Below are positions 1,795-29,649 of a stretch of 64,000 nucleotides of DNA, one piece after another (within the stretch, counting starts at the first letter, position 1; each line of letters opens with the position of its first letter). The position numbers and the translations under genes are program-made. The DNA comes from Paragordius varius. Its lineage: Eukaryota > Animalia > Nematomorpha. Location of the stretch: the NCBI GenBank assembly GCA_964247055.1, contig OZ176051.1, positions 992,001 to 1,056,000 on the forward strand, in the 5' to 3' direction. The notes beneath the pieces are model-generated. The model made no database searches, was not told the origin of the DNA, and was given only the letters and a program-made list of their open reading frames with translations.

Positions 1795-4700
1795 AAGTTA
1801 AACTTTGTCCTTAAAAATCGGATATTGGTCACCGGTGAACGAGACTATTTTTTATAAATTCTCTTAGTAGGACTACATCAAAATATATAGATAGTTTGAC
1901 AAACTCTTTAATATCTGATTTTTACAGCGATACTTTAAAAATTAATGTATAATTTAGCATAGGACAATAAGCAAGTTAAACTTTGTCCTTAAAAATCGGG
2001 GATTGGTCGCCGGTAAAGAAAATTTTATTTTATACATTCTCTTAGTATGACTACATCAAAATATAGAGATAGTTTGACAAACTCTTTCATATCCGATTTT
2101 TACAACGATACTTTAAAAATTAATGTATAAAATTAGTCGCATCAATACTCAAGTTAAACTTTGTATTTAAAAATCGGATATTGGTCACCGGTGAACAAAA
2201 TTATTATTTATACATTCTCTTATTAAGAGTACATCAAAATATAGAGATAGTTGGACAAACTCTTTAATATCTGATTTTTACAGCGATACTTTAAAAATTA
2301 ATGTATAAAACTAGTCGCATCAATACTCAAGTTAAACTTTGTCCTTAAAAATCGGATATTGGTCACCGGTGAACGAAATTATTTTTTATACATTCTCTTA
2401 GTAGGACTACATCAAAATATAGAGATAGTTTGACAAACTCTTTCATATCCGATTTTTACAACGATACTTTAAAAATTAATGTATAAAATTAGTCGCATCA
2501 ATACTCAAGTTAAACTTTATCCTTAAAAATCGGATATTGGTCAACGGTGAACGAAACTATTTTTTATACATTCTCTTAGTAGCACTACATCAAAATATAG
2601 AGATAGTTTGACAAACTCTTTCATATCCGATTTTTACAACGATACTTCAAAAATTAATGTATAAAATTAGTCGCATCAATACTCAGGTTAAACTTTGTCC
2701 TTAAAAATCGGATATTGGTCAACGGTGAACGAAACTATTTTTTATTTATTCTCTTGAGATAGTTTGACAAACTCTTTCATATCCGATTTTTACAACGATA
2801 CTTTAAAAATTAATGTATAAAACTAGTCGCATCAAAACTCAAGTTAAACTTTGTCCTTAAAAATCGGATATTGGTCACCGGTGAACGAGACTATTTTTTA
2901 TAAATTCTCCTAGTAGGACTACATCAAAATATAGAGATAGTTTGATAAACTCTTTAATATCTGATTTTTACAGCGATACTTTAAAAATTTATGTATAATT
3001 TAGCATACGACAATAAGCAAGTTAAACTTTGGCTTTAAAAATCGGATATTGGTCACCGGTGAACAAAATTATTTATTTATACATTCTCTTAGTAAGACTA
3101 CATCAAAATATAGAGATAGTTTCACAAACTCTTATATCCGATTTTTACAACGATACTTTAAAAATTAATGTATAAAACTAGTCTAATCAAAACTCAAGTT
3201 AAACTTTGTCCTTAAAAATTGGATATTGGTCACCGGTGAACGAAATTATTTTTTATACATTCTCTTAGTAGGACTACATCAAAATATAGAGATAGTTTGA
3301 CAAACTCTTTCATATCCGATTTTTACAACGATACTTTAAAAATTAATGTATAAAATTAGTCGCATCAATACTCAAGTTAAACTTTGTCCTTAAAAATCGG
3401 ATATTGGTCAACGGTGAACGAAACTATTTTTTATACATTCCCTTAGTAGGACTACATCAAAATATAGAGATAGTTTAACAAACTCTTTCATATCCGATTT
3501 TTACAACGATACTTTAAAAATTAATGTATAAAACTAGTCGCATCAAAACTCAAGTTAAACTTTGTCCTTAAAAATCGGATATTGGTCACCGGTGAACGAG
3601 ACTATTTTTTATAAATTCTCTTAGTAGGACTACATCAAAATATATAGATAGTTTGACAAACTCTTTAATATCTGATTTTTACAGCGATACTTTAAAAATT
3701 AATGTATAATTTAGCATAGGACAATAAGCAAGTTAAACTTTGTCCTTAAAAATCGGGGATTGGTCGCCGGTAAAGAAAATTATATTTTATACATTCTCTT
3801 AGTAGGACTACATCAAAATATAGAGATATTTTGACAAACTCTTTCATATCCGATTTTTACAACGATACTTTAAAAATTAATGTATAAAACTAGTTGCATC
3901 AATACTCAAGTTAAACTTTGTCCTTAAAAATCGGATATTGGTCACCGGTGAACGAGACTATTTTTTATAAATTCTCTTAGTAGGACTACATCAAAATATA
4001 TAGATAGTTTGACAAACTCTTTAATATCTGATTTTTACAGCGATACTTTAAAAATTAATGTATAATTTAGCATAGGACAATAAGCAAGTTAAACTTTGTC
4101 CTTAAAAATCGGGGATTGGTCGCCGGTAAAGAAAATTTTATTTTATACATTCTCTTAGTATGACTACATCAAAATATAGAGATAGTTTGACAAACTCTTT
4201 CATATCCGATTTTTACAACGATACTTTAAAAATTAATGTATAAAATTAGTCGCATCAATACTCAAGTTAAACTTTGTATTTAAAAATCGGATATTGGTCA
4301 CCGGTGAACAAAATTATTATTTATACATTCTCTTATTAAGAGTACATCAAAATATAGAGATAGTTGGACAAACTCTTTAATATCTGATTTTTACAGCGAT
4401 ACTTTAAAAATTAATGTATAAAACTAGTCGCATCAATACTCAAGTTAAACTTTGTCCTTAAAAATCGGATATTGGTCACCGGTGAACGAAATTATTTTTT
4501 ATACATTCTCTTAGTAGGACTACATCAAAATATAGAGATAGTTTGACAAACTCTTTCATATCCGATTTTTACAACGATACTTTAAAAATTAATGTATAAA
4601 ATTAGTCGCATCAATACTCAAGTTAAACTTTATCCTTAAAAATCGGATATTGGTCAACGGTGAACGAAACTATTTTTTATACATTCTCTTAGTAGCACTA

Positions 4701-6061
4701 CATCAAAATATAGAGATAGTTTGACAAACTCTTTCATATCCGATTTTTACAACGATACTTCAAAAATTAATGTATAAAATTAGTCGCATCAATACTCAGG
4801 TTAAACTTTGTCCTTAAAAATCGGATATTGGTCAACGGTGAACGAAACTATTTTTTATTTATTCTCTTGAGATAGTTTGACAAACTCTTTCATATCCGAT
4901 TTTTACAACGATACTTTAAAAATTAATGTATAAAACTAGTCGCATCAAAACTCAAGTTAAACTTTGTCCTTAAAAATCGGATATTGGTCACCGGTGAACG
5001 AGACTATTTTTTATAAATTCTCCTAGTAGGACTACATCAAAATATAGAGATAGTTTGATAAACTCTTTAATATCTGATTTTTACAGCGATACTTTAAAAA
5101 TTTATGTATAATTTAGCATACGACAATAAGCAAGTTAAACTTTGGCTTTAAAAATCGGATATTGGTCACCGGTGAACAAAATTATTTATTTATACATTCT
5201 CTTAGTAAGACTACATCAAAATATAGAGATAGTTTCACAAACTCTTATATCCGATTTTTACAACGATACTTTAAAAATTAATGTATAAAACTAGTCTAAT
5301 CAAAACTCAAGTTAAACTTTGTCCTTAAAAATTGGATATTGGTCACCGGTGAACGAAATTATTTTTTATACATTCTCTTAGTAGGACTACATCAAAATAT
5401 AGAGATAGTTTGACAAACTCTTTCATATCCGATTTTTACAACGATACTTTAAAAATTAATGTATAAAATTAGTCGCATCAATACTCAAGTTAAACTTTGT
5501 CCTTAAAAATCGGATATTGGTCAACGGTGAACGAAACTATTTTTTATACATTCCCTTAGTAGGACTACATCAAAATATAGAGATAGTTTAACAAACTCTT
5601 TCATATCCGATTTTTACAACGATACTTTAAAAATTAATGTATAAAACTAGTCGCATCAAAACTCAAGTTAAACTTTGTCCTTAAAAATCGGATATTGGTC
5701 ACCGGTGAACGAGACTATTTTTTATAAATTCTCTTAGTAGGACTACATCAAAATATATAGATAGTTTGACAAACTCTTTAATATCTGATTTTTACAGCGA
5801 TACTTTAAAAATTAATGTATAATTTAGCATAGGACAATAAGCAAGTTAAACTTTGTCCTTAAAAATCGGGGATTGGTCGCCGGTAAAGAAAATTATATTT
5901 TATACATTCTCTTAGTAGGACTACATCAAAATATAGAGATATTTTGACAAACTCTTTCATATCCGATTTTTACAACGATACTTTAAAAATTAATGTATAA
6001 AACTAGTTGCATCAATACTCAAGTTAAACTTTGTCCTTAAAAATCGGATATTGGTCACCGG
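1795..6061 (+). repeat. 12-monomer higher-order repeat, period 2113 bp, 2 copies
   Basis: The 22-bp-deletion marker (2755/4868) and the TATATAGAT variants recur at +2113. Confidence 0.85.
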
Positions 6062-26600: not shown

Positions 26601-26668
26601 GATTTTTACAACGATACTTTAAAAATTAATGTATAAAATTAGTCGCATCAATACTCAAGTTAAACTTT

Positions 26669-27481
26669 GACTGATGTGAATTTAAGTCAGTAAGATAGTA
26701 AGACGGTAAGACATAAAGATAGTAAGACGGTAAGACAGTAAGATAGTAAGACGGTAAGACAGTAAGATAGTAAGACAGTAAGCATAAGACAGTAAGATAT
26801 TTGTATAAAAAACATACATTCGTGATAAGTCTGCTAATAGGAGACTTATCAAAATTTCAAAGTATTATAACTTGAAAAATATTGCATCTTTTTGAATTCT
26901 GTAAACTGGAGGATTGAAAGTCAGGTATCCTTTACAAATAATATATAGGGTTAAGTGAAAATGCGTAATTCTTTCGACACGAAACTGAGTTTACTAAACA
27001 CCTCCAAAAATTGTATAAATCTTAAAAAATATATAAAAAATCTTGGGTATTATAGAAGAAAATGGCATCTATACCATTGTTTCTTATTTGGTAAATATTT
27101 TTTTTATATTTTTACAGTTTTAACAATTTTTTTTAAAAAAATTGTACTTCATGGTTCTGACAACAATAAAAATAAATATAGCTAAATATTATTATAATAA
27201 ATTTGAATTTTGTATTCTAAAATCAGCTTTTAACCCGATAATAACCGTTTTCCCCTAAAATTTTACATGCAGAACGATATCAGATCCAGGGAAGTTTTGG
27301 TGGAATTACTTGAAAAGTAAATTATTAATAAATATATAGATTTCCAATATTATATTCTAGAAAATCCAACAGTTTAGTTATGCAAAAAGATCAATGAAAT
27401 TTATTGTTTAGTGAATATATAACAAAAGTTAATGATGGCCAGAACTTAAAACAGTTACAGAAGATGTTTACTAATATTAAA
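26669..27481 (+). repeat. Left inverted arm (813 bp)
   Basis: Reverse complement of 27643-28455. The only mismatches I saw were 26714/28410 and 27470-71/27653-54. Confidence 0.97.
26688..26797 (+). repeat. Subterminal 8-bp-period array (CA/TA/CG)GTAAGA, about 14 units
   Basis: CAGTAAGA-TAGTAAGA-CGGTAAGA cycles, starting 19 bp inside the terminus. Confidence 0.95.
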
Positions 27482-27655
27482 TATACGATTAAAAAGAAGT
27501 TGCAAAAAATGAAACAAACTGGAAACAAAAAGCCACCTATTTTTCTGGAATATGAAAAAAAATTATACTCATTACTTGAATATTCATCCAGTAGCGAAAT
27601 ACAAGGTCATAAAAATCAAGGCAATAATTTTGATACGTTTGGTTTAATATTATAA
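27267..27655 (+). pseudogene. Disrupted Myb/SANT-like DNA-binding protein gene (Harbinger ORF1-like), 3'-truncated
   Basis: ATG at 27267 and a putative GT-AG intron at 27317-27360 give MQNDIRSREVLVELLEKKSNSLVMQKDQ*NLLFSEYITKVNDGQNLKQLQKMFTNIKYTIKKKLQKMKQTGNKKPPIFLEYEKKLYSLLE. The pattern KQL.K.F.NIK...KKK...KQTG matches helix 3 and the TG tail of Myb_DNA-bind_5-type domains, and the TGA at 27395-97 sits where a conserved Trp is expected. Matched by eye; no HMM was run. Confidence 0.62.
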
Positions 27656-27857
27656 AACATCTTCTGTAACTGTTTTAAGTTCTGGCCATCATTAACTTTT
27701 GTTATATATTCACTAAACAATAAATTTCATTGATCTTTTTGCATAACTAAACTGTTGGATTTTCTAGAATATAATATTGGAAATCTATATATTTATTAAT
27801 AATTTACTTTTCAAGTAATTCCACCAAAACTTCCCTGGATCTGATATCGTTCTGCAT
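27655..27857 (-). pseudogene. Mirror copy of the 5' part of the Myb/SANT-like remnant
   Basis: The right arm duplicates 27267-27469 in reverse orientation, up to ...KQLQKMF. Confidence 0.55.
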
Positions 27858-28326
27858 GTAAAATTTTAGGGGAAAACGGTTATTATCGGGTTAAAAGCTG
27901 ATTTTAGAATACAAAATTCAAATTTATTATAATAATATTTAGCTATATTTATTTTTATTGTTGTCAGAACCATGAAGTACAATTTTTTTAAAAAAAATTG
28001 TTAAAACTGTAAAAATATAAAAAAAATATTTACCAAATAAGAAACAATGGTATAGATGCCATTTTCTTCTATAATACCCAAGATTTTTTATATATTTTTT
28101 AAGATTTATACAATTTTTGGAGGTGTTTAGTAAACTCAGTTTCGTGTCGAAAGAATTACGCATTTTCACTTAACCCTATATATTATTTGTAAAGGATACC
28201 TGACTTTCAATCCTCCAGTTTACAGAATTCAAAAAGATGCAATATTTTTCAAGTTATAATACTTTGAAATTTTGATAAGTCTCCTATTAGCAGACTTATC
28301 ACGAATGTATGTTTTTTATACAAATA

Positions 28327-28436
28327 TCTTACTGTCTTATGCTTACTGTCTTACTATCTTACTGTCTTACCGTCTTACTATCTTACTGTCTTACCGTCTT
28401 ACTATCTTTCTGTCTTACCGTCTTACTATCTTACTG
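28327..28436 (-). repeat. Mirror subterminal 8-bp-period array
   Basis: TCTTACTG/TCTTACTA/TCTTACCG cycles, the reverse complement of 26688-26797 with one difference. Confidence 0.95.
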
Positions 28437-29649
28437 ACTTAAATTCACATCAGTCTTTGTCTTTAAAAATCGGATATTGGTCAACGGTGAACGAAACTAT
28501 TTTTTATACATTCTCTTAGTAGGACTACATCAAAATATAGAGATGGTTTGACAAACTCTTTATCCGATTTTTACAACGATACTTTAAAAATTAATGTATA
28601 AAATTAGTCGCATCAATACTCAAGTTAAACTTTATCCTTAAAAATCGGATATTGGTCAACGGTGAACGAAACTATTTTTTATACATTCTCTTAGTAGCAC
28701 TACATCAAAATATAGAGATAGTTTGACAAACTCTTTCATATCCGATTTTTACAACGATACTTTAAAAATTAATGTATAAAACTAGTTGCATCAATACTCA
28801 AGTTAAACTTTGTCCTTAAAAATCGGATATTGGTCACCGGTGAACGAAACTATTTTTTGTACATTCTCTTAGTAGGACTACATCAAAATATAGAGATAGT
28901 TTGACAAACTCTTTCATATCCGATTTTTACAACGATACTTTAAAAATTAATGTATAAAATTAGTCGCATCAATACTCAAGTTAAACTTTATCCTTAAAAA
29001 TCGGATATTGGTCAACGGTGAACGAAACTATTTTTTATACATTCTCTTAGTAGGACTACATCAAAATATAGAGATAGTTTGACAAACTCTTTATCCGATT
29101 TTTACAACGATACTTTAAAAATTAATGTATAAAACTAGTTGCATCAATACTCAAGTTAAACTTTGTCCTTAAAAATCGGATATTGGTCACCGGTGAACGA
29201 AACTATTTTTTATACATTATCTTAGTAGGACTACATCAAAATATAGAGATAGTTTGACAAACTCTTTCATATCCGATTTTTACAACGATACTTTAAAAAT
29301 TAATGTATAAAATTAGTCGCATCAACTCAAGTTAAACTTTGTCCTTAAAAATCGGATATTGGTCAACGGTGAACAAAACTATTTTTTATACATTCTCTTA
29401 GTAGGACTACATTAAAATATAGAGATAGTTTGACAAACTCTTTATCCGATTTTTAAAACGATACTTTAAAAATTAATGTATAAAATTAGTCGCATCAATA
29501 CTCAAGTTAAACTTTGTCCTTAAAAATCGGATATTGGTCAACGATGAACGAAACTATTTTTTATACATTCTCTTAGTAGGACTACATCAAAATATAGAGA
29601 TAGTTTGACAAACTCTTTCATATCCGATTTTTACAACGATACTTTAAAA

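Follow-up and report, generated by a model that had tools for sequence, protein, structure and literature searches.

A probable end-copied palindrome with the first exons of a MADF-type gene in a PIF/Harbinger transposon family of Paragordius varius

An open reading frame noticed beside a long inverted repeat in the genome of Paragordius varius (Nematomorpha) is likely to represent the first two exons, at the 5′ end, of the MADF (Myb/SANT-like) gene carried by a PIF/Harbinger transposon with long arms, in a copy that was rebuilt into a near-perfect palindrome. The window, meaning the whole stretch of DNA analyzed, is 64,000 nt in length (contig OZ176051.1, positions 992,001 to 1,056,000) and belongs to a eukaryotic assembly of 110.6 Mb with a GC content of 27%. 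Read in this way, an odd palindrome in a satellite array would be explained as ordinary transposon biology, by a known route of remodelling and with no new kind of element; it would belong to a young PIF/Harbinger family in a little-studied animal genome, with very long inverted repeats that were repeatedly rebuilt by end-copying.

Insertion site, termini, and arms

The element is a non-autonomous PIF/Harbinger transposon of 1787 bp (Table 1) and the single interruption of a 57-kb satellite array, which occupies positions 1-57289 with a 178-bp unit and a 356-bp higher-order period. With the element and one TTT removed, the empty site reads as a normal satellite monomer, AAACTTTGTC, and the 178-bp phase is unbroken across the element. 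Short (156-bp) and long (222-225-bp) monomers also recur at intervals within the array. The outermost bases of the element were set as G...C for a 3-bp reading of the target site duplication (TSD). An alternative with the 5-bp TSD CTTTG and termini ACTGATG...CATCAGT was dropped; the 3-bp G...C reading alone fits the other copies. At least 15 further family copies were found elsewhere in the genome, with 91-99% identity to the window element, and the TSDs of the family, taken from copies with both termini except L029, were TAA, TTA, ATA, CTA, AAA, ATT, TAT, and TTT. The copy at L029 (G000:C3:12522000-12527000, element at 1900-3015) consists of the repeats only, has flanks that are mutually reverse-complementary, and is nested in a larger palindrome.

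Near each terminus lies an array of 8-bp repeats, in which a third variant, TAAGACGG, occurs besides TAAGACAG and TAAGATAG, and the number of repeats differs among family copies; they are candidate sites for binding by the MADF protein. Assignment to the strict Foldback (FB-like) class was considered and rejected, as the array covers only ∼100 nt per arm and the family has a Harbinger transposase.

Inverted arms of 813 nt each, with 161 nt between them, were returned by a repeat search (26669-27481 and 27643-28455). The arms match at 810/813 positions and differ at element positions 46, 802, and 803. Continuous homology stops at element position 801 (window position 27469), where the Phe codon of KQLQKMF ends, just where a preliminary description of this DNA had seen the arm end in mid-ORF. 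The ORF list also holds a mirrored frame on the minus strand at 27616-27720. The ordinary repeat of the family accounts for 666 of the 801 arm bases, which leaves only 135 nt per arm as an extension particular to this copy; the earlier proposal that the long arms are not original TIRs is thus borne out for these inner 135 nt, which are new, but not for the remainder. Across repeat positions 140-660, the window arms show 0/521 differences, compared with 0.2-1.5% in other copies. In its overall composition, the window copy runs along the MADF end from element position 1 to ∼986 and then returns, in reverse complement, from ∼801 to 1, and the architecture map described below places no transposase-side sequence in it. 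The preliminary description of an element with two copies of one end was therefore correct: the MADF end is present twice and the transposase end is absent.

A near-perfect palindrome inside a 57-kb satellite that is hard to assemble could reflect an assembly artefact, for example a chimeric fold-back long read, within a real insertion. This explanation is very improbable, given that both termini are present with a matching 3-bp TSD, that the satellite phase continues, that the arms carry three mismatches, and that the junction falls in a microhomology; moreover, several family copies on other contigs have the same palindromic structure, with arms that have diverged by 1-3%.

Table 1. Features of the window element; positions count from the first base of the 64,000-nt window.
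Feature	Position	Strand	Remarks
Left TSD copy, TTT	26666..26668		From empty-site reconstruction
Whole element	26669..28455		Termini G-ACTGATG...CATCAGT-C
Left family inverted repeat, 666 nt	26669..27334	+	Present at both ends of all family copies; boundary set by MADF-side/transposase-side divergence
Subterminal 8-bp repeat array, TAAGACAG / TAAGATAG	26683..26782		Mirror at 28342-28441
Exon 1 of MADF/Myb-like gene, MQNDIRSREVLVELLEK	27267..27316	+	Inside family repeat; homologous to N-terminus of paralogue L052, MQNERARDLLINVLKK
Intron 1, 23-nt GT-AG	27317..27339	+	Family repeat ends within it, at 27334
Inner left arm, 135 nt, MADF side	27335..27469	+	Single-copy in ordinary members, duplicated in window copy
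Exon 2, most of DNA-binding domain, interrupted by stop	27340..27641	+	3′ end predicted from GT at 27642 and downstream exons of other copies
Nonsense TGA at conserved Trp	27395..27397	+	Mirror at 27727-27729 on minus strand; TGG in 9/9 other copies
Unpaired loop, remainder of exon 2	27470..27642	+	From arm comparison
Rearrangement junction	27643..27657		Parental sequence and arm reverse complement agree at 14/15
Second 135 nt, inverted: exon 2 (5′ part) plus inner 5 nt of intron 1; TGA as in left arm	27655..27789	-	
Right family inverted repeat, 666 nt	27790..28455	-	Holds second exon 1, 27808-27857 minus
Right TSD copy, TTT	28456..28458		3-bp duplication

The MADF-type gene and the transposase

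The components from which a hidden gene had been proposed are all present, namely an ORF at 27404-27655, a TGA upstream of it, and an ATG at 27267. The ATG begins a 17-codon stretch that is followed by GT, and the frame of the ORF is open upstream to 27340 apart from the TGA. The 44-nt GT-AG segment that was to join the two parts proved too long. An intron of 23 nt preserves the frame, and the leftover 21 nt encode FPILYSR, which aligns with YPILYSK/YPIVFAK in paralogues; in the paralogue L052, a 24-nt GT-AG segment occupies the same place and phase. MADF exon 1 thus lies within the 666-nt repeat of the family, whose boundary falls 17 nt into intron 1.

The TGA had been read as a Trp codon, but this was rejected in favor of a nonsense mutation specific to the window copy: all nine other copies that cover the region have TGG, and the transposase frame of the family closes normally under the standard code. 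The window has TGAAAT for TGGGAT in both arms, and its three private substitutions (27383 C to A and 27397-27398 GG to AA) all lie within 16 nt of exon 2 and are the same in both arms, with none in the 521 nt compared within the inverted repeat. None of the copies retrieved shares either the junction or the private mutations of the window copy. The TAA at 27653-55, which closes the ORF, arises from the rearrangement junction. Other copies continue in frame, and the corresponding point resembles the probable start of a second small intron. The MADF gene is dead in the window copy, with its Trp codon changed to TGA in both arms and its downstream exons absent. In L003:2482-2768 and L005:2441-2765, GT-AG segments of 26 and 27 nt were read by eye past exon 2, and these intact copies seem to run into an acidic C-terminal region (...MIMDEEGEEIIIQPPP...). 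On this reading, four or more exons are probable for the MADF gene.

The identity of the encoded protein was approached through profiles and genomic context, each exon being searched or translated separately. The Myb/SANT-like models suggested for it, PF13873 and PF13837, were not matched by the window piece or by the intact frames of L003 at E-values up to 10, and direct Pfam scans of the window piece and of a 109-aa intact homologue yielded no Myb match. In six-frame scans of the genome, PF13837 had no match anywhere, and PF13873 matched other Harbinger families but zero copies of the window family. A 119-aa intact frame at L003:2156-2512 that includes the FPILYSR residues matched MADF_DNA_bdg (PF10545) with 18.2 bits and an E-value of 0.0032, which falls short of the 22-bit gathering score; with a query that lacks exon 1, the alignment covers positions 7-78 of the 84 in the profile, and it arises only when FPILYSR is part of the query. 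The paralogue L052, ∼40% identical, scored 23.1 bits with the same profile and thus lies above the 22-bit cut-off.

Relatives found in the genome with the window peptide adjoin DDE_Tnp_4 matches, and some of these ORFs score on Myb_DNA-bind_5. With phmmer, the intact L003 ORF retrieved PF13873-scoring ORFs adjoining DDE genes, with E-values between 4e-9 and 4e-5 when a small local set was searched, and in hhalign the family profile (A2) aligned to the PF13873-positive Harbinger group (A3) over 92 columns with 96.7% probability and an E-value of 3.2e-10. Structural comparison was uninformative: an AlphaFold (AF2) model from an 11-sequence alignment had three main helices at a pLDDT of 66.8, a Foldseek search with this mediocre model found no match, and VIA-align reached Z 4.3 at best and ranked the Zeste DNA-binding domain (5cqq) 12th (Z 3.2), showing no discrimination at this pLDDT of 67. 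The Zeste DNA-binding domain was also on top in a profile search of PDB sequences, with a non-significant E-value of 0.076. The ORF is accepted here as the MADF / Myb_DNA-bind_5-type, Myb/SANT-like second gene of a Harbinger element, by a link that is transitive, through profiles and context. The proposal of a Myb/SANT gene crossing the arm boundary is upheld to this extent, as a gene of MADF type by profile, although it does not match PF13873 or PF13837 directly.

A six-frame genome scan with DDE_Tnp_4 (PF13359) gave a match inside one family member, L020 (G000:C6:3942946-3946349), the termini of which are 98% identical to those of the window element. Its 340-aa open frame (L020:2713-3732) scored 117.7 bits (E 4.8e-34) across the entire profile (positions 1-158), and a further match was to Plant_tran (PF04827). 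Since this transposase lies between the same ends and the TSDs are 3 bp long, the length typical of PIF/Harbinger elements (in which TSDs are usually TWA-like), the family is assigned to PIF/Harbinger, as had been proposed. L020 is the sole family copy with a complete-looking transposase frame, free of stops, and it contains no MADF gene. The copy is itself a palindrome with 1448-nt arms (locus G000:C6:3941000-3948500, element at 1946-5349), in which one arm holds the start of the transposase gene, which extends from there into the middle, and the opposite arm contains an inverted version truncated to 247 aa. A stop-free in-frame path at L020:2533-2760, traced by hand and possibly due to chance, joins the ATG of the repeat to the transposase frame through exon 1 (2533-2582), exon 2 (2616-2645), and exon 3 (2671-2718), with the transposase frame from 2742; the GT-AG segments are 33, 25, and 23 nt, and the transposase has its own ATG at 2736. 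In other Harbinger families of this genome, the transposase and the Myb-like gene are convergent.

Family architecture and origin of the palindrome

To describe the family architecture, 16 copies were mapped on three modules: the repeat common to all, and the sequences on the MADF and on the transposase side. Element positions 1-666 are common to both ends of every mapped copy, and beyond position 666 each end continues into either the MADF or the transposase side. Three copies (L002, L006, and L014) pair a fragment of the transposase side at one terminus with a fragment of the MADF side at the opposite one; five (L003, L008, L026, L027, and L028) retain one side only; MADF sequence is present at both ends in the window copy, L004, L005, and L021; and transposase sequence is present at both ends in L020. 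No complete two-gene copy of the family was found in the assembly. Because of the paired fragments in L002, L006, and L014, the parent is reconstructed as an element with 666-nt repeats and two inward-reading, convergent genes, and we infer this two-gene parent from its deletion derivatives. An intact parent had been predicted to have the same left end, a DDE_Tnp_4 transposase, and a right end that differed and bore a short TIR; a copy with the same ends and a DDE_Tnp_4 transposase does exist, but there is no short-TIR parent, as all copies have the same 666 nt at both ends. The 666-nt repeat takes in MADF exon 1 together with the first 17 nt of intron 1, so that a piece of the MADF end is duplicated at the transposase end; the family repeat was probably built by an older end-copying event of this type.

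Related families in the genome also have long inverted arms. The MADF ORFs of three sister families, L049 (G000:C4:6938500-6943500), L052 (C2:9792500-9797000), and L053 (C1:12739500-12745000), are 40-55% identical to that of the window, and the transposase DNA of L049 and L053 is ∼70% identical. Their arms, of ∼850, 985, and 1640 nt, already include the 5′ part of the MADF gene, and long arms may therefore have a greater age than is supposed here. The L049 sequence upstream of the transposase includes a truncated 5′ part of the MADF gene, which stops close to codons homologous to the end of the window arm. A more distant family (L024, L025, and L031; e.g., G000:C1:6303500-6309700), with ∼75% identity over element positions 129-393, comprises many copies of ∼2.3-kb elements with ∼1000-nt arms at 94-99% identity; no MADF ORF was detected in L024, L025, or L031.

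These families bear on the alternative that arms of ∼800 nt are the original architecture of the lineage, that the copies with 666-nt repeats and a transposase are deletion derivatives, and that no copying took place in the window element. The arm lengths of the sister families in the same genome, the arm of L049 that ends upstream of the transposase near the homologous spot in the MADF gene, and the MADF sequence in both arms of L004 and L005 are all in line with it. However, all three transposase/MADF copies and all transposase-only copies leave the MADF sequence at exactly position 666, whereas the arm extensions of the MADF/MADF copies end differently, at 801 in the window copy, about 947 in L004, 795 in L005, and 728 in L021. 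In addition, the inverted copy in the window starts in a microhomology within intron 2 and makes an artificial stop, and private mutations of the window copy are present in both arms. Original long arms are thus very unlikely for the window element, and copying from the MADF end is the preferred reading.

The junction suggests how this copying may have occurred. The inverted copy starts in a microhomology within the probable intron 2, where a single base fits neither the parental sequence nor the reverse complement of the arm. This 15-nt microhomology points to template switching during repair; little or no microhomology was found at the junctions of the other palindromic copies L005 and L020. 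A template switch during DNA synthesis, most likely in the repair of an excision gap, probably produced the palindrome, to judge from the end product alone. In one route, the growing strand would snap back at the inverted microhomology TTTAATATTA / TAATATTAAA; in a second, pairing via the identical 666-nt repeat would bring it back onto the template at the wrong end. By either route, both arms would be copied from one end. With both termini kept, the window copy could still move in trans, by means of the transposase of the C6 copy (L020) together with an intact MADF protein, e.g., that of L003.

Intramolecular or ectopic recombination with gene conversion between the long inverted repeats, as in Galileo and without gap repair or snap-back, could lead to a similar structure. 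Inverted repeats that lie near each other and measure 600 nt or more are prone to recombination, this route was favored by the authors of the Galileo study for the same type of product (PMC3573991), and the 0/521 differences between the arms would be expected from conversion as well. Yet conversion homogenizes existing homology and alone cannot swap a non-homologous interior for an inverted copy, and a junction microhomology of 14/15 is typical of template switching or end joining. Galileo-like recombination is unlikely, though the end product does not separate it from the template-switch routes.

Comparison with known systems

With transposase/MADF, MADF/MADF, and transposase/transposase copies in one family, these elements offer a worked example of inverted-repeat growth. 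The family repeat that ends within MADF intron 1 is a small new detail; general views are unchanged.

PIF/Harbinger elements of nematodes, namely Turmoil1/2 of C. elegans and Harbinger-1M_cIno of C. inopinata, encode a DDE transposase and a separate MADF protein, non-autonomous derivatives with only the MADF gene move in trans, and the inverted repeats of the C. elegans Turmoil elements are unusually extended and composite (PMC13668399). As far as descriptions can be compared, the window family is alike in its 3-bp TSD and in a DDE_Tnp_4-type transposase and a MADF gene in opposite orientations; unlike in the nematode elements, its 666-nt repeat takes in MADF exon 1 and stops inside intron 1, many of its copies are palindromes with one end present twice, and the host belongs to a different phylum.

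Mu killer of maize, an inverted duplication of the 5′ end of a transposon, silences its own family (PMC3440606). By analogy, the 666-nt repeat could be a functional module instead of a by-product, and the palindromic copies family repressors of this kind, a reading that we regard as doubtful. If it were true, a promoter, first exon, and 5′ splice site in the repeat could drive both convergent genes from either end, on the transposase side by way of the stop-free path traced in L020, and palindromic copies transcribed from that promoter would yield hairpin RNA against the shared 5′ exon. The likeness to Mu killer is one of DNA architecture only, with hairpin RNA possible in principle; Mu killer is a Mutator derivative with genetically shown silencing and transcription from a flanking gene, whereas the window element lies in a satellite and is known from DNA alone. 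With its clean microhomology junction, the window copy may nonetheless serve as an example of how Mu killer-like inverted duplications originate spontaneously.

Internally deleted derivatives are known to arise through abortive gap repair, as in Ds from Ac, MITEs, and the deletions of P elements. The window family resembles these systems in having deletions with short-homology junctions, with L002, L006, and L014 as textbook cases; the window copy differs in that the end it kept was copied, in inverted orientation, into the place of the part it lost. The paper on the Harbinger derivatives likewise refers to abortive gap repair (PMC13668399).

In Galileo, a P-superfamily element of Drosophila, copies with "2 recombinant TIRs" have recruited adjacent internal sequence in inverted orientation, which lengthened their repeats (PMC3573991). 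Both systems have long, variable inverted repeats of at least 600 nt that are longest in copies without transposase, and in the non-autonomous copies of both a region inside one repeat recurs in inverted orientation beside the other repeat. They differ in superfamily and TSD (P superfamily with 7 bp, compared with Harbinger and 3 bp), and the extensions in Galileo are non-coding F1/F2 flanks, whereas those of the present family are coding exons, of the MADF gene or, in L020, of the transposase.
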